A stretch of 64,000 nucleotides of DNA from positions 263,545 through 327,544 of the forward strand of contig RDEW01000046.1 in assembly GCA_011109175.1 (NCBI GenBank), written 5' to 3'. The translations under genes and the position numbers were made by a program. The notes under the pieces are model-generated. The model worked only from the letters and a program-made list of their open reading frames with translations, made no database searches and was not told where the DNA came from. Each line of letters begins with the position of its first letter. Position 1 is the stretch's first letter. The stretch is from Dicyema japonicum. Its lineage: Eukaryota > Animalia > Dicyemida. Below, one piece after another: positions 3,974 through 59,900 of the stretch.

Positions 3974-5085
3974 ATGTGGAATAAAGCAATGTCAGTTGCA
4001 TATTATGGATACAAATACAATAAACCTGAGGTTAGAACACGTCGACTAAAACTGAAAGATTATCTAAATTTAAATATTAGAAAAGATAATAAAATAATAA
4101 TTAAAAGTCTAAATAATAATCATTTTAGGTAGAAGGACTCAAGTTATTCAAGTTGAACAAATTTTTGAGTTTATTGAAGATCTTGATCGAATATCAACTG
4201 AATTGTTAAAATATTCAGTATACAAAAGGTTTTTACATTATTTTAAAATTTAAGTCAGAAACTAAAGACTCTCCATACAGTGACAGACCATTTTAAATCT
4301 GGATACCCACAAGCGATCGCTGTCTCTCCAAGAACTGGAAAAATTGCCGTAGTGGATCGTTTTCAAGGAAAGGTATCTTATTTCAACAGCTCTGTTATTT
4401 TTATTAATTCATTTGAAATTCCAAACAATGATTACAAATCAATATCTTTAACTTTTCTCATAAATGAGTCTTTGTTAATATGTATGAATTGTGGTTCAAG
4501 AAATCTGATTGTAATTATAATTTTAATAAGCAGATTCACGAAAATACAGAAAAAATAGACGAAATTGACTATTATCCACCACCACTTTGTGTTTCCTCAA
4601 ATAGTACTGTTGTTGCAATTCTTGACGAGTCATTGAAATTGACATTATTTAAAGAAACCCCCAAAAGCAATCCAATTATGTCAATATTATTTTCTGATAT
4701 ATTTACAACGTTTAATGATATTTTTAATCAATTCAGTTTGTGTTTAAATCAAGATATAATATATGTAGCAAGCAAAACAGAAAGTTTCATATGTATGTAT
4801 AAAATGAGTGATAAATCAATTCATAAAATTAAACTCAAAGTCGAGGATCTGACAATACGCCCCTCAGCAATTTGCTGTGATTTGAAGGGACATCTTATTA
4901 TTGCTGATTTATTTAATCACAGAATTTGGGAGATAAATTCAGATCATGTCATTATTATGGATGTTCAAAATGACATTCACGGAATAACAGGAGTGGCTAT
5001 TTCACCAAATAGTAATTTGATAATATTAGAAATATGGATTTGTCCACAAGTTGCATCAATCAAAGTAATCCTTAATAAATACTAA
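3974..5085 (+). CDS. NHL-repeat / beta-propeller-like protein, 4 exons
   Basis: Continuous frame after removing GT-AG introns 4107-4128 (22 nt), 4229-4254 (26 nt) and 4511-4533 (23 nt). NHL-like blades PQAIAVSPRTGKIAVVD, PSAICCDLKGHLIIAD and ITGVAISPNSNLII. Confidence 0.6.
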
Positions 5086-5301
5086 TCTGTGAAATTCTAA
5101 TAATTAAATTTATTTTACCAATAACAAAATCTTATGACTGGATGTAATTGGAAAGAATAAAAGTAGCACAAATTAAAGTGTTTACTCAAAGTTAGCCTTT
5201 TTTCCTAATTATCAATTATACACTGCTCACGGCCAGCTATCGATCACACAAATTGATAATGCTAAATTTACGAATTAGGCATTGATTAAATTATCAACAT
5301 A

Positions 5302-6530
5302 TTTTTTTAAATTTTTTTTAACTTTATTTAACAAAAAAGTAACAGTAACAACTGCTCTCATAATTGATGACGCATTTCCTCTGACGATTTGCAAAAAAAT
5401 GCGCTCAATGAGCCAGCTCCTTTCTCTCCGATCATTTTTTCTCTTCGCGATGAGCGAACCGATTCTATTTAGCAAGATCAGAGACCTGCTTCCTATAATT
5501 CCTGACATTTCTACTGCGACTGGTTCGAAAATGAACTGTCCACCAAGACATGCGTATTTCTTTACTTTAGAATCTCAGCCTTTTTTGAAGCAGAGCCTAG
5601 GTAGTTGCTGTCGTTGCAAGGTTGGAGGGAGAGAGGCCACCGACACAGGTGGCGTCCCAGGAAAGGTATTTACCACTTTCTAATGGGAAGAGAGTGGTTC
5701 CTTTTGGTCTTCGGTTTGCTTGAGCAAGCTTAAGCGACTGGTTCAGCGTCCGAACCGTTAATGTAGTGTAGGATCTGGCGTGAGACCACTAGAAGCATAT
5801 ATTGAAAATAGACAGGCCGGGATAAGCGTATTCCGATTCCTCCGTAGCGAAGAGGTAGTTTACATTGGATAAATCCAGTTTTATCAAAAGAAATGTTGAT
5901 CGTTTCTTTAACGGCAGTCCTCAGCTTATCGTTGATGGCTCTTAAAAAATTCATGTCCGTGAAACATGGGGCTGTCAGTATAGGAAAAAAGAGTAAGGTG
6001 AAAATTCCTGAGGAAGAATAAAGACATGTGGGAGTCCATGGTTTGTAAATTTAATGTAAATTGTTGAAATGATGTATTTTTTTCCTCCAGGAAAGTTGAT
6101 AAATTATTGCAGTATAGAGGAGAGCCAAGAAAAATTGCGTTTTCGAGTTGGGTGACCGATAAATCGCGGAGATAAGTAGAAATAGCAGCCACTGCACGGC
6201 CGAAGTCTTCCTCTCCGCAAACAACGTTTATAATTTTACATTTATATGGGTTCGGTTCCGCAAGTGCAGAGTTGGCAGACTCGACTTCCGCCATCACAAT
6301 ATCTCAATTACCTCCGACGGTCACGTCGTCCAGGTACCATAGGTTCAATGAAGTTCGCATCGTCGATGCTGCACAGTCGATACCCAAAGCAAAGAGCAAG
6401 GTGCCAAGAGGGTCACCTTGTTGAACTTCAGTCTTGGATTCGACGATGTGTTGCCAGAATATCAGCGTACATGGGAACCATAAACAAATTTTTATATTCT
6501 GTGATTTCCGGGATCCTGGAGATGCAAATA
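5302..6530 (-). mobile_element. CRE-clade (RLE-type) non-LTR retrotransposon, 5'-truncated and degenerate
   Basis: VQQGDPLG, WYLDD, CKLPLRYGGIGIR, YLSWDATC and the restriction-like endonuclease C-terminus (FEPVAVE...ERIFLQIVRGNA). A-rich tail at the 3' end. Confidence 0.8.
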
Positions 6531-34479: not shown

Positions 34480-35630
34480 TAATTAGGGACATGGAAAATA
34501 TGACTCGTTTATGTTATCGTCAAGTGGTTCTCCTGGAGGCACTCAATGCCAATAGGCTTTAAAAAAGACCATTCTCTCCCCTCCTCGTCACATCCTTGCA
34601 TGGGGTAACTCCTATTATCCTCGGACCAGCTGACTCTCAAATATGTTTGAGATGTTTAGTGACAATTACTCCCGATCTGCCTTCGCCGTTTTTTCAACGT
34701 AGCTTTCTAACTGTAGATCCTCCAAAATGTACCTGAAAAATATATCCCAGTTTATCATGGCTTTAATGCATCAGGGCCCATATGCGAGAAGGAGTTGATT
34801 TTCCATCGATATTCAGAAGGCTTTCGACTCGGTCTCAAAAAATCACCTTACAAAAAAGATCTTTGACTCTAATATTCACCCGAATTTTTAAACTCTGTCT
34901 GGAAAACTTCCTGTCAGGATGTCGTGGAAGCGTATTCCTGGCGAAAAGAGAGATCACGACTGTTTCCAAAAGGAGTTCCACAGTGCTCTCCGCTATCAAT
35001 GGCATTATTTAGTTTTTCCTTGACGATGTCTGACAGATTGACGCCCCAAACAAATTACTCTTGCCCCATGCAGATGCTATCGTCCAAACCTCAAGGAACC
35101 GTTCCACCTCCGTGGGGACCGCAGTAATCCAAGTGTACCTGGATCGTATGATGAATTAGCTCTTATGGAATAAACATTTCTGTGTCATCATCAAAATCTA
35201 CTCTATTCACGTCTGATCGCCTGCTACAAGGATGTTCCCGAAGTATGCCTGGGACATGTGCCTATAGCTGATTCGAAGAACTCTAAAATCCGTGGCATGA
35301 CAAATGAATCATTGATGACCTTCACAAAACATTCCGACCGAATACTAACTAAAGGACTTCAGAAGTTGAATTTCCTCCAGGCAATTGTTGTGAAGAGCCC
35401 TCACCAATTAGAAGATTGCATATGCAAATTATAGTCAAACTATCGTTCCCGCTATAGAATATGCTTGTGTTTCATAGAATTATGCACTCTATGTTGTCGT
35501 TGGTTCCTACAAGAGAAGACAAGGCTTCAAGTGGCAATGGTGGCTTTTTCCGGCTAGCCTCGATCTTCAAGGCATTCGTCCAAGAGATGGATGGGCCCTA
35601 TATACCACATGCATAAGAGATGCACGGTTC
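34480..35630 (+). mobile_element. Degenerate I/Jockey-like LINE RT region
   Basis: DIQKAFDSV and GVPQCSPLS. Confidence 0.6.
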
Positions 35631-35640
35631 AATTAATTGT

Positions 35641-36250
35641 TTAGCTCAAAACGAAATGCTTTTCGATCTTCCATAAGTCTGTGAGGCATTTCAGAACATT
35701 AGTTTTCTTTTCGCATTTCGTAATTGCGTTTTCAACATGGGGGGAGAATGACATATGCATGTCAAAAGTCACTCCAAGGATCCTTTGGGATTTTCTGAAA
35801 GGAATAGCTTCACTGTTTGCCTTCAGTTCGACCGTCCGTCTTCCCAGTCTCTTGTCTAAAGTAAATAGGGTTGTGACAGACTTTACACTGCTGGAAGTTA
35901 GGCGATTCTTCGATAGCCATTTATCAAGACGGTCCAGGTTTTCTTGCAATTTCGAAGTGGTAATCAGGATGTCCTGATCGCGTGACGCAATGAGCCTGGA
36001 CATAATCACCAGTATTAACTGACTTTTCAATGCACATCTCACGTCGTTTTCAGTGAAGTGAATCGTATCCGGTTGTTCTAACTTATGCCGACGACATCGT
36101 CATTGCGTCACGCACTCGACCAATACATGCTTGTGTGGAGTCGAGGGAGAAGCATCAGGCCAAGATGAGGTCCCTGCTAGATCGTGCTGGGATCACGTGA
36201 TTAGTTAGTTTGTGTAATCGTGGTCTCTGGTGTTGTTATTATTAGGACAA
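35641..36250. mobile_element. Rearranged LINE: inverted RT segment, 28-bp foreign patch, plus-strand YADD segment and 3' end
   Basis: Minus 35641-35992 encodes IASRDQDI...KCLTDLW. Plus 36021-36113 encodes LTYADDIVIASR. Plus 36114-36245 is the 3' end with stem-loop and tail. Confidence 0.75.
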
Positions 36251-36259
36251 TTTCCACCC

Positions 36260-37060
36260 TAATGATAAGATATTTCTCCGTGGACAGTTAATATACCCTC
36301 GAATACGACGCAATAATGTTCAGCCTGATCTTTGGGATTTGTTAAGAATCTTCCATTCACATCATAGAGTTTAAGTTTGTTTGTTTTTTTCTGTTAAGCA
36401 GGCGAATTGCAGTGAACCTTTTTGATGAGTCCTTGAGCTATTCAACTTCTGCAACTCTTAGATCAAGTAGGTTAGTGCCGTGATTCTTATTCAAAATCTT
36501 TAAAGTTTTCTGGGTGGATGTTCGTATAGACTTCAAGATTTGTTTCTTGTTCAGATCTGACGTATTTTCCTGTTGTAGTCTTAGTTCCCTTTGTTATTTA
36601 ACGAGTGCGGGGACATCTGGACATTTTTACATAGTGCTGGGAACCACATTCAGATACTTTCATTTGCTCCCGAAAGGATCCCTTTCATTGTCTCGGCCCA
36701 GATGCCTCCTGGAGGAAGTCCGGCATCCAGGTTTCGGAAGATTCGTAATTGACAGTTGCTAGTTGTCCCTGATCAATGTAGAGCAATACAGTTGTTCCAT
36801 TTTGTAGCTTCTTTTTACATCTACGTTTAGCTCTCTATCGTAGGTCAGTTGATGTCCTTGTAGTGAACTTGGCAGAGACTATCTAGTGATCACTGTCAAT
36901 AACTGCACTTCCGTAAGACCTCGAGGCACGTAGGAGTGATTTTTCTTTGATTCAGCAGATGATCTATTCAATTTAGTTGAAAATGTTAATAGAGCCTTCG
37001 GTAGGTAAGAATCGTTGGCCTGTCCATGTCGTTTATGACCAACATGAAAGCTATTGTTTT
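36260..37060 (-). mobile_element. RTE fragment (APE C-terminus and linker)
   Basis: QRELRLQQENT...LKDSSKRFTAIRLL aligns to the intact RTE linker. Confidence 0.6.
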
Positions 37061-37797: not shown

Positions 37798-37845
37798 CAT
37801 AATTAATAATTGATTGTTATTTCTAGATTAGTTAATTATTGTTGG

Positions 37846-40679
37846 TTAAATTTTGGACTGGGGGTTAGGTAGTTTAGCCATAGAGGGGTTGACACCCCAA
37901 ATTTCATTAGCATACTGAAATATTGAACGATCAGAGGAGAAATATCCAGCAGAAACAATATTCTTAAAACACATACTATTCCAATGATCAGTTTTCTAAA
38001 TAATAATAATGGGTCAACCAAATATGATTCCTCAATTTTAAGTTGTACTCTGATATAATCGTCATAATCAGCCATAACCATAAATCTATCGTGGTTCAAG
38101 ATACTATAAAAAATTTCATGGAAAAGAGTAGGGTCATCTCTACTAAAGAATCCATCTCTTATTTGATTAAAGCACTCTCTGAGTAATGGATTATTATCAT
38201 AATAGGAACGAGGATTATATCTATGATTATCAGTATAAAACTACCCTGATGAATATTTTGATTTGACATCATCTATTTTCATTCCGAATATAAATATATT
38301 CTCCATTCCAACCTGTTCTGCCATTTCCACATTAGCACCATCCAAAGTCCCAACTGTTAAGGCTCCATTTAGCTTAAATCATAATTATAATTACCATAAA
38401 CTTCATATTTCCTGTTCCTGATGCTTCAGTGCCAGCTAACGATATTTGTTCACTTAAATCAGCAGAAGGAATAATTTTCTCAGCTAATGATACTTTGTAA
38501 TCTGGTAGAAATAAAACTCTGAGATCATTATTTGTTTCAGGATCATTATTAATGACATCAGCAACATTGCATATCAATTTAATGATTAGTTTGGCCATCT
38601 TATAACCAGGTGCTGCCTTTCCTCCAATAATGACAGTTCGTGGGACTACAGTATATTCTTCTAACCCAGATTTGACTCGTTTTAGTCTGTTATACAAAGT
38701 AATAATATGAAGGCAGTTTAATAGTTGTCGTTTGTATTCATGAATTCTCTTAACTTGAACATCAAACATGCTTGAAGGATCAATTGCCATTCCATATGTT
38801 TTCTCAACATAAGCAGCAAATTTTCGTTTATTATTCTTAGATTACAAGTAATCATACCTGTTTTATGACTCCAATTTCGTCCATGATAAGTCGATTATCA
38901 CAAAGGTGAGAGAGTTGTTTCAAATGACTTAAATCAGTAATAAACCCATCTCCAATGTGCTGTAGTAATAAACATTATAAACAGAATGAATAAAGTCAGT
39001 CAAAGCTGGATTACAGTACACCAGCCAACGTCGAGGAGTTATTCCATTTGTTTTGTTTTGAAACTTTTCAGGAGTCATTCTAAAAAAGTCAGAAAAGCTA
39101 AGAAATAACAGCAAAGTCATACATGTCTGTTTTTATAAGTTCAGAGTGAAGTTTGGCAACTCCATTAACCGCGTATGACCCAATTATTGCTAAAAATGCC
39201 ATATTCACCCGTTTATTACAATCCTCCTCAATAAGACTCATTCTACGAACGATCTCAAGATCACGTGGCCATAATGTGGCGACATTCTATAATACTATAA
39301 TAATAAACACCTGCAAATGAATAAAATTAATTTTGAAAATAATTTGTAATATACGAGGAATTACAACACCAAGCATTGAAACAGGCCAATGTTCCAATGC
39401 TTCAGGAAGTACAGTATGATTTGTATAGCTAAATGTTTTGGTGCAAATCTTCCAAGCATAATCCCAATCCAGTCCTTCCACATCCACAAGTATTCTCATC
39501 AATTCAGGGACTGCCAATGAAGGATGGGTATCATTTAATTGAATTGCAACCTAAATTTTAATATAAAGTAGTGCTTTATCGGGAAATTGATCAAACAAAG
39601 TCCTGGGCGTCTTTGATGACTTATATCGACGAATAATATCTTGTAAAGTAGCTGCCACGAGAAAATATTCCTGTTTAAGACGGAGTTCCTTTCCTTCAAA
39701 TCTCTAAAAGTAAAATAATATAAAACATCATCATTTGGGTACAAAACACGAGTTATTGATTCTGCAAGGTTTGTGTCTATCATAGCCTGGACATAATCAC
39801 CAGTGTTAACTAATACTTAATCACATAAATACAGCATTCTAACAGAAACCCAGCTGAAGGTTTAGCAGCCCATAACCTCATTGTGATGACGTGGTTATTT
39901 CCATAACCAGGAACAGGAGTGTCATAAGGCATTGCGTAAACAATTTGAGTATCGATCCAATTAACTTTCCCATCAACTTCATCTGTTCTTCCATAAAAGT
40001 GAATAGGAAGAATATATTCATATCTACATTTTTCCCACGGATTGCTGTATTTAAGCCAATTATCAGCCTCTTCTCTCTAAATATTGAATGATTTGTCAAT
40101 AACTTGATAACCATCATATATGCGTTGCGTGAAGATTCCATAATCATAACGGAGTCCATATCCCATTGCTGCCAAACCTAAGGTTGCCATTGAATCGAGA
40201 TAACAAGCAGCCAAACGCCCAAGTCCCCCATTCCCAAGTCCAGCATCTGGTTCCATTTCCTCTAACTCCTCCATATCAAGTCCCAACTTTATGTGATTAT
40301 TCACCATTACCTGATAAATAGCTTCCTCACATTCACCTTCAATACCAATATTTATCATAGAATTGCTCAAAAGTCGACCAACGTAGAATTCCATAGAAAG
40401 ATAATAAATTCTCTAAACGTGAATGGACAAGTAAACTTTTGAATCTCGTTCATAGTGGTACTGGTGAGATCTAATCCAACGGGATGCCATTTTGTCGCTT
40501 ACAACGTATGCGAGAGAGAAGTAATAATCTCGTCTAGTGGCAACATTTCTATCCTTGCACCGAGAGTAGTGAAGATGTCGATTAAAACTTTGTTTGATAT
40601 CTTTTACGTCGTCGGCTCCAGGAATACTGCGGACACTAATTTGTTTTCTCCTTTCAGAATCAGATATGGGAGAGGCCAT
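37846..40679 (-). CDS. PYG: Glycogen phosphorylase, 14 exons
   Basis: [39 protein letters not shown] and [11 protein letters not shown] (PLP lysine). Thirteen introns of 22-27 nt; frame intact throughout. Confidence 0.97.
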
Positions 40680-40789
40680 TAACAAGTTAATTCAAATTAA
40701 AAAAATAAGATTATGATTTGGATAAATATTATTATTATTAGCAATATAATATAAATTTATATAAACTACAGTTCAAATGGTTCCTATCC

Positions 40790-56767: not shown

Positions 56768-56962
56768 TGGATAGTTGTGAAGTTGTCACATTGATAATAA
56801 TCCCTATACGATGAGATATGTTAATCCAATTTGATATGTATGATTCACTCATAATTGGGCAATGAACATGATTTATCAGAACTTCATCTTGAATTATTGC
56901 GAAAGGTTATATCAAAAACTTTATCTTGAAAAAACTGCTATCCTATAATCTTTGCTTTTCAT
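56768..56962. repeat. 195-bp block duplicated at 59483-59676
   Basis: Direct repeat differing by one substitution and three 1-nt indels. Confidence 0.95.
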
Positions 56963-57999: not shown

Positions 58000-59900
58000 C
58001 ATACTAATTATAGTCCCGCATGTGCAGCAAAAGAAACAAGGTTATGTGTCATCTTTTCCATGCTCCCCTGCCAAGGCTCTCATGTTGTCCAGGTCGTTTT
58101 TAGATTTCTTTTGATATCGACCAGGTCTTTTTGGCAGTGTTGTTCTAGGTCTTCCACGATAACGGCATTCTTGACCAACATAGTATGTTTACATAGATTT
58201 GTTCAGGGGATGTTAATTCCATGTTCAGCACGTGTCCGAAGAGCTTCCATCGGGATTCCAGTACTTCTAAACTGATGGGTCTATATAAAGCATTTCTTGA
58301 TATTCTTCGTGTGCCAGGTAGTTCCTGTTATTTTTCTCAGCTGACCTCTGTGGAACGAGTCTAGTTTTTCCATATCCGCTGATAAGGTCGCCAAGTTCCA
58401 GCGTTATATAAAAGTACAGGTTCAATGAATGAGTCGTATAATAGGATTCTCATCAAATTTTATTGAATAGGTCTTTCCGACTCTCACAAGGAGCTCAGTG
58501 CTCGACTCATCAAGAAATCCGCTCAGTACCCCCATTAATTTGTTCCTGTTAACCGCATCAAAAGCTCTTGATAGGTCAATTCCCAGGATATTGGTGCGTT
58601 ACGGTTACTTTGATATGTTGCACACCTCCATCTGTGACTCCAGACCGCATCAGCTGTGGATCTTACTTCTCGAAAACTACTTTGACTATCTGATAGGTAT
58701 TTGTAAGCAGATCCTTTTATTCGTTCAAGCACAATGTTGCTAAGAATTTGCATAATGAATTTAGTGTATGATGAATCGCGAATCTTTGAGCGGTCCTCTG
58801 GTTTTGTTGATTTTTTGTATGGAGATTTGTAGTCCCGTACACAGAGGTAGAGTGCAATTGGTAGAAAACTTTCCATTTATTGCAATTTTGTCTTACAGGC
58901 AGTGGGGTCCGTATTTTAGTAGTTTGGCATATATTTTGTCTTGTCTAGGAATTCTGTTATTCTTGAGTTTTCGGCAGGCCGTTTTGATTTCCTCGGCCGT
59001 GATTGGTATCTCCAGGGATCTTGGCCTTCCATCAAATGGGTGGATTTCTATGGTTTTGATGTTGAAAAGCTTCTCAAAGTGAGCCGAGATGGCTTCAGTT
59101 TGTTCTTCGGTGTTCAGTATCAGCTTACCGTTCTCGTCTTTTATGGGTAGTCGACTTTGGTTGTTCGCCGCAGGAAACGGGCAGCGACGTACACCTGTGC
59201 GTTGTCTTTCACTTTGTTTACCTTTTCTATACAGGAAGCGATTTCTTCTAGGAAAAGCTTACTTGCTCAGACCTTTATTTTTCTTCTTGTCTTTCGCTCT
59301 GAAGGACTTTTCTCGTATTAGCGTCAGTGGCATTTGATTTTCTCATATTTATTTCTTTTAAACTTTTCGCATGCTCAGAAACATCTGGATGAATAGCCTT
59401 TATGTGCATTTTACTATTCTCCCTTTTGCCAGGACATGCCTCAGCAGTTTCATTGATGGTGTCATATGTGCGTTTCCAGGCATGGATAGTTGTGAAGTTG
59501 TCACATTGATAATAATCCCCTATACGATAAGATATGTTAATCCAATTTGATATGTATGATTCACTCATAATTGGGCAATGAACATGATTTATCAGAACTT
59601 CATCTTGAATTATTGCGAAAGGTTATATCAAAAACTTTATCTTGAAAAACTGCTATCTATAATCTTTGCTTTTCATCGCTACTCTGTCGGATCTTTCGCT
59701 ACTCTCCCGCAGTGTGGCGGCATAAACATTTATAATTGTCAAAAAGCACTTGACTGGGAAAAAATATATTGAAAACGCGAAGAAGGCGAGACAAAGGCCA
59801 AATACTTTAGACAGACAAGTTACCGTCTGGCCCATGCGAAACCAGTCGACTATAACCTTTAAAATACTCCCTTGTATTTTAGAAGTCGTTGCGTAAATCC
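58000..59900 (-). mobile_element. Degenerate RTE carrying the 195-bp foreign block
   Basis: INVYAAT, then the block, then linker, QSSFREVRSTAD, GIDLSRAF and LLYNAGTW. Confidence 0.8.

Follow-up and report, generated by a model that had tools for sequence, protein, structure and literature searches.

We analyzed a 64-kb stretch of the Dicyema japonicum genome (the window) that contains the gene for glycogen phosphorylase (PYG), located on the minus strand at about 37800-40700 and recognized by exon-by-exon alignment with solved vertebrate enzymes. Fragments of three unrelated retroelements are piled up in the 3 kb downstream of PYG: an old LINE fragment of family O, a mosaic of LINE family N, and a truncated copy of repeat R (Table 1). 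Introns in the window are 23-40 nt long and GC content is about 36%; for the whole genome, a GC content of 36.7% and introns of 38 bp on average have been published (PMC6736024). Elsewhere in the window, 56768-56962 and 59483-59676 form a local direct duplication of 195 nt at 98% identity, 2.7 kb apart, whose only other genomic copy is on contig C367 at 87% identity. At 94% identity or above, the 64 kb contain no duplications other than this 195-nt pair, one LINE pair, and a 28-nt match between the family N mosaic and PYG.

Table 1. Features of the family N mosaic, its flanks, and the PYG source of its 28-nt patch (window coordinates)
Feature	Position	Strand	Description
Left flank, old diverged LINE RT fragment, family O	34716-35519	+	52 matches, 65-85% identity; RT motifs in translation
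Inverted LINE N block	35520-35993	-	L027 5976 to 5454; 40 genomic copies, 86-91% identity
28-nt patch	35993-36020	+	Same orientation as 39784-39811; antisense to PYG
Second inverted LINE N piece, ~50-54 nt	36021-36074	-	L027 4491 to 4442
Forward LINE N piece, 41 nt	36073-36113	+	L027 5427-5467; encodes ..LTYADDIVIASR
Forward LINE N 3' end	36113-36243	+	L027 6024-6153; last 29 codons, ~43-nt 3' UTR, (ATT)n tail
Right flank, 5'-truncated repeat R copy	36262-37039	+	
Patch source	39784-39811	-	PYG exon start and intron acceptor AG

The part of PYG that concerns us is an exon border. The exons were searched one at a time; the upstream exon aligns with residues 228-258 of brain phosphorylase, and the downstream exon begins at residue 262 of the same chain. 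Between them we place an intron at 39810-39832, because both flanking exons align to solved glycogen phosphorylases and only a 23-nt GT-AG intron restores frame and length. A 40-nt intron model contained an in-frame stop and was discarded in favor of the 23-nt GT-AG intron given by the PDB alignments. This is a micro-intron, with a canonical donor and homology on both sides. Its acceptor AG is 39810-39811, and 39784-39809 are the first 26 nt of the coding exon (F-NTGDYVQA).

LINE family N encodes apurinic-type endonuclease motifs and a reverse transcriptase with a Pfam RVT_1 match, and has a short 3' UTR and an (ATT)n tail, features that we take to be RTE-like. A word-based protein search and a PDB search gave no clade for the family, and an atlas search returned generic eukaryotic RT clusters only. 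Among 30 fetched loci of the family, internal deletions without inversion are common. Copies L056 (the same as L023; G000:C312:907347-911079) and L049 (G000:C323:350724-353773) are each made of four or five collinear segments that join, without filler, at overlaps of 0-2 nt where internal deletions have removed sequence. Family N often shows forward jumps or microdeletions. Two copies on different contigs, L051 (G000:C57:735170-738219) and L055 (G000:C328:25141-28190), have the same deletion of L027 4763-5500 and the same 3' limit at 5732, which suggests that they stem from a deletion derivative that was itself copied. Copy L027, our coordinate reference, carries at 5100-5415 a nested insertion of ~310 nt of another short repeat, which occurs alone in L004, L036, L039, and L041 and beside a truncated family N copy in L028, and which may be a SINE-like element.

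We mapped the mosaic by blastn to copies L027, L028, L029, L030, and L031, and also searched the flanks against the assembly. All pieces other than the 28-nt patch are family N, and both orientations lie adjacent: 35520-35993 and 36021-36074 are antisense, and 36073-36243 is sense. The piece map was identical against three independent reference copies, the normal-order copies L027, L029, and L030. The inverted block, which encodes the RT region directly behind the YADD motif, lacks ~42 nt (L027 about 5914-5950) in a deletion specific to this copy, absent from all reference copies and lying between two GG[T/A]GGCT direct repeats at 35542-35545 (window 35538-35550); this may be either another template slip or a later microdeletion. 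The second inverted piece comes from the N-terminal region of the RT; 40 genomic copies match it between the same boundaries at 88-98% identity, and 13 copies were aligned. In typical copies its source is ~650 nt upstream of the YADD region, as against 936 nt in L027, the difference being due to the nested insertion in that copy. In the forward 3' end the stop codon is at 36199-36201, and the 3' terminus is the same as in 14 other copies.

The inversion joint thus holds three short templated patches, of 28, about 54, and 41 nt, the latter two from LINE N. The sequence-only reading had put the 28-nt patch exactly between an inverted and a forward LINE segment, which proved incorrect: its right neighbor, 36021-36074, is itself inverted LINE, and forward sequence begins only at 36073-36075. 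The forward part lacks 5468-6023 of the element, and the inverted block carries 5454-5976. Since the block starts at 5976 and the sense 3' end at 6024, 47 nt of element sequence are lost between them. The 13-nt inverted repeat previously noted at 35980-35992 and 36101-36113 is real and one base longer, with 14 nt at 35980-35993 and 36100-36113 that are 100% complementary. It arises because both arms copy L027 5454-5467 in opposite orientation. As the stretch missing from the forward part is almost exactly the one that is present inverted, the shared 14-mer is read as a 14-nt duplication, like those at the inversion points of twin-primed insertions, and not as a separate feature. The mosaic is non-coding debris, and nothing points to a function or to an influence on PYG.

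The patch matches PYG at 27 of 28 positions in direct orientation, with a spacing of 3791 nt, confirming the match that the sequence-only reading had placed 3.8 kb away. In 100 dinucleotide shuffles of the window there was no match to the 28-mer at up to 3 mismatches. The genome-wide search that had been proposed, run at the same threshold over the whole 67.5-Mb assembly (67,542,437 bases in 377 contigs), found only two sites, the patch and its PYG source. The shuffles and this genome-wide uniqueness rule out a chance match. Nor is the 28-mer a component of the LINE, as had been suggested for checking: for either flanking LINE segment, over 40 copies are without it. A decayed PYG pseudogene fragment is likewise ruled out, as LINE homology reaches both ends of the patch. 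Positions 35994-36019 are derivable from PYG only; the A at 35993 is common to the left LINE block and the patch, and the T at 36020 to the patch and the right LINE piece. The sole difference between patch and source (36014 A, 39805 G) is an AAC/AAT change that is synonymous in PYG, and so gives no clue as to which copy changed. For a randomly drawn source, such proximity would have a chance of about 1e-4. We conclude that the patch is a copy templated from the nearby PYG locus and set into a LINE inversion joint.

Microhomology is only 1-2 nt at every junction. The left block and the patch share 1 nt (A at 35993). The patch and the ~50-nt piece share 1 nt (T at 36020); just before it, PYG GTGTTAAC and LINE GTTTTAAT match imperfectly, at 6/8, and the family N variant L013 then has TGAC, like the window. 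The ~50-nt piece overlaps the forward 41-mer by 2 nt (TT at 36073-36074), and the 41-mer and the 3' end share 1 nt (C at 36113).

The left edge of the insertion is sharp. Family O homology to other copies stops at about 35503, and leftward of 35520 there is no LINE N homology to extend the inverted block, even at word size 7. Compared with the element sequence beyond 5976 in L027, used as a stand-in for the source copy, the left flank (..GAGAAGA) shows no microhomology. On the right, an 18-nt stretch (36244-36261) separates the LINE N tail from repeat R, and the upstream part of repeat R, sought left of the insertion in order to rebuild the empty site, is absent there. No target-site duplication surrounds the whole insertion. 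This is uninformative rather than contrary, as 14 ordinary family N copies also show no consistent target-site duplication.

What served as template for the patch can be judged from its right end. Read on the plus strand, a spliced template would give ..gttaa+ag, whereas the patch has ..attaa+ct. The sequence-only reading had counted 2 nt of PYG intron here (36019-36020) and deduced a genomic or unspliced template. The C at 36019 does match the intron and not the spliced junction, and is the sole diagnostic base; the T at 36020 also fits the next LINE piece, so that the case for an unspliced template stands on one or two bases, not on a robust stretch. With at least one intron-derived base in the patch, a spliced, diffusible mRNA is an unlikely template, and the 3.8-kb proximity of the source likewise disfavors it. 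The template was probably local and unspliced, either the genomic minus strand or nascent pre-mRNA tethered at the locus. With its 1-2 nt of intron, the patch shows no sign of splicing or of other RNA-only features, and nothing in it points to RNA over DNA as template. Taken together, a close source, an unspliced template, and a 28-mer unique in the genome suggest that, whichever polymerase was at work, the template of the patch was kept close to the break.

Antisense to PYG, the patch shares its strand with the antisense LINE pieces on either side, a polarity that serial copying of sense RNAs by a single cDNA would produce. On the transcribed strand, the insertion site follows the PYG stop at a distance of ~1.8 kb, so that, speculatively, a read-through polymerase could have held unspliced RNA there. 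That the 28 nt were indeed reverse-transcribed from a nascent, unspliced PYG transcript held by polymerase past the gene end is nevertheless distinctly unlikely in our estimate.

The five pieces are ordered: the antisense pieces come first, with falling coordinates, and the sense pieces next, with rising coordinates, ending in the tail. By our own counting this polarity and order would arise by chance about 1 time in 8 if the pieces were random, and they fit RNA-templated synthesis at both ends of a break at least as well as they fit later break repair. We suggest that the mosaic is probably the result of a single family N insertion that went wrong in twin-priming fashion, with each of the two cDNAs jumping templates. 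The order of events given here is read back from one end product. A first cDNA would have been primed at the bottom-strand nick on the 3' end of the element RNA and would have copied 6153 to 6024. A second cDNA would have been started within that RNA, near 5976, by the 3' end of the top strand, and would have run down to 5454. The first enzyme, blocked by the RNA:cDNA hybrid, would then have skipped it, resuming at 5467 for another 41 nt; such a jump would explain why the forward part lacks nearly exactly what is inverted, with a 14-nt overlap. The second cDNA, having quit the LINE RNA at 5454, would have taken 28 nt from a local PYG template, spanning the border of intron and exon, re-annealed through the imperfect GT.TTAA to LINE RNA ~650 nt further upstream, and copied ~50 nt before the two cDNA ends were joined at the 2-nt overlap. 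Either the LINE RT or a host repair polymerase may have synthesized the patch, as the sequence fits both. The earlier proposal of a templated insertion made during break repair or aberrant integration therefore stands as far as the PYG-templated insert at a LINE inversion joint is concerned; as to the enzyme, the sequence gives no means of telling polymerase theta from the RT of the LINE. Against a single event, copying of the same 14 nt of one RNA by two enzymes needs strand displacement or two RNA molecules. Also, no inverted adjacent piece was present in any of the 30 fetched family N loci, so that twin priming is not established as usual for this family. Since internal deletions without inversion are common in it, the 5467/6024 junction could be a later deletion.

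The most serious alternative, which we consider unlikely though by no means negligible, is that an ordinary 5'-truncated plus-strand copy (~4442-6153) was scrambled later by serial template switching during replication (FoSTeS/MMBIR type) or by break repair of the polymerase-theta type, with the 28 nt taken directly from PYG genomic DNA 3.8 kb away. A source that is near, in cis, in direct orientation, and includes intron sequence is natural for a DNA template; patches of 28-54 nt with 1-2 nt of microhomology fit alternative end joining; deletions are frequent among family N copies; and the window holds a second local direct duplication, the 195-nt pair. Later scrambling asks for much, however. 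The inverted block abuts a non-N flank, so that the left inversion breakpoint must equal the 5' end of the original copy. Also required are an inversion, the loss of 962 nt with filler in their place, a further deletion of 47 nt, and re-insertion of 41 nt in forward orientation. It also leaves the strict antisense-then-sense polarity and the monotonic coordinates without a reason.

We consider it very unlikely that the mosaic is an assembly artifact, made by merging or gap closing within repeats, even though the region is made of repeats and the published assembly merged Platanus and Falcon outputs and used GapCloser. Mis-joins in an assembly graph need shared k-mers of tens of bases, and the junctions here share 1-2 nt; the patch differs from its source at one base, which argues against a simple read mix-up; and the four junctions all fall within 120 nt, less than one MiSeq read. 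A chance meeting of independent LINE N insertions, at least two and oppositely oriented, with the 28 nt as filler at one 5' junction, would suit a region where fragments of O, N, and R are piled up, and L028 is 5'-truncated at 5456, close to the breakpoint here. This reading is highly improbable all the same: the inverted block lacks the 3' end that is obligatory for target-primed insertion and so is no ordinary independent insertion, its extent matches what the forward copy lacks, and its 5454 end falls within 14 nt of the start of the forward deletion at 5467, a coincidence of ~1%.

Twin priming, and the 5'-inverted LINE-1 insertions attributed to it, were reportedly described by Ostertag and Kazazian in 2001. 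As in a twin-primed L1, two parts of one element are here opposed, the sense part has the 3' end, and the 5' flank directly adjoins the inverted part; at the inversion point a little element sequence is lost (47 nt) and a little duplicated (14 nt), with 1-2 nt of microhomology at the joint. In human L1 experiments, 5'-inverted insertions have deletions or duplications of 1-10 bp at the inversion point, and templated insertions at insertion sites were found as well, with an example of a "secondary RT template switch" (PMC11702581); "filler" in twin-primed L1s has also been noted (PMC2837659). The mosaic differs from these in that its element is a dicyemid LINE with an (ATT)n tail and no target-site duplications, in the three templated patches at the joint, in a forward part that picks up again, for 41 nt, upstream of the inverted block, and in an inversion seen in none of 30 other family N loci.

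Chimeras of L1 with cellular RNAs, made by template switching or twin priming, have been catalogued (PMC13174262). Like U6/L1 and mRNA/L1 chimeras, the mosaic joins a non-LINE stretch to LINE cDNA with little or no homology, and its polarity is consistent with one cDNA serially copying sense RNAs. Unlike them, it has a foreign piece of only 28 nt that sits inside the insertion and not at its 5' end, it goes back to LINE RNA after that piece, and the source of the piece is an unspliced neighboring gene instead of an abundant small RNA or mature mRNA. The resemblance to polymerase-theta templated insertions lies in inserts of tens of nucleotides, a nearby template on the same chromosome, several patches in a row, and a patch entered at 1 nt (A) and left at 1 nt (T) plus the imperfect GT.TTAA; two of the three patches, in contrast, need a LINE RNA or cDNA template. 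FoSTeS/MMBIR products similarly join short segments of mixed orientation at microhomologies, with templates within a few kb, whereas here everything lies within one retroelement insertion, one breakpoint is the insertion's own end, and the polarity follows the rule for cDNA. On these comparisons, the mosaic appears to belong to a known class of aberrant LINE integration products.

This is a single case, and its value is illustrative rather than conceptual. The mosaic would be a nucleotide-level record, outside mammals, of an aberrant retrotransposon integration with two opposed cDNAs, several template jumps, and a patch from unspliced sequence of the nearest gene. It would carry outcomes seen with human L1 over to a LINE very distant from L1, in an animal whose genome is highly reduced. 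Should the nascent-transcript reading be true, the joint would record a LINE RT at its integration site sampling the chromatin-tethered pre-mRNA of a neighbor. If local patches recur in LINE copies of this compact genome, they would point to a general, proximity-driven process of template switching.
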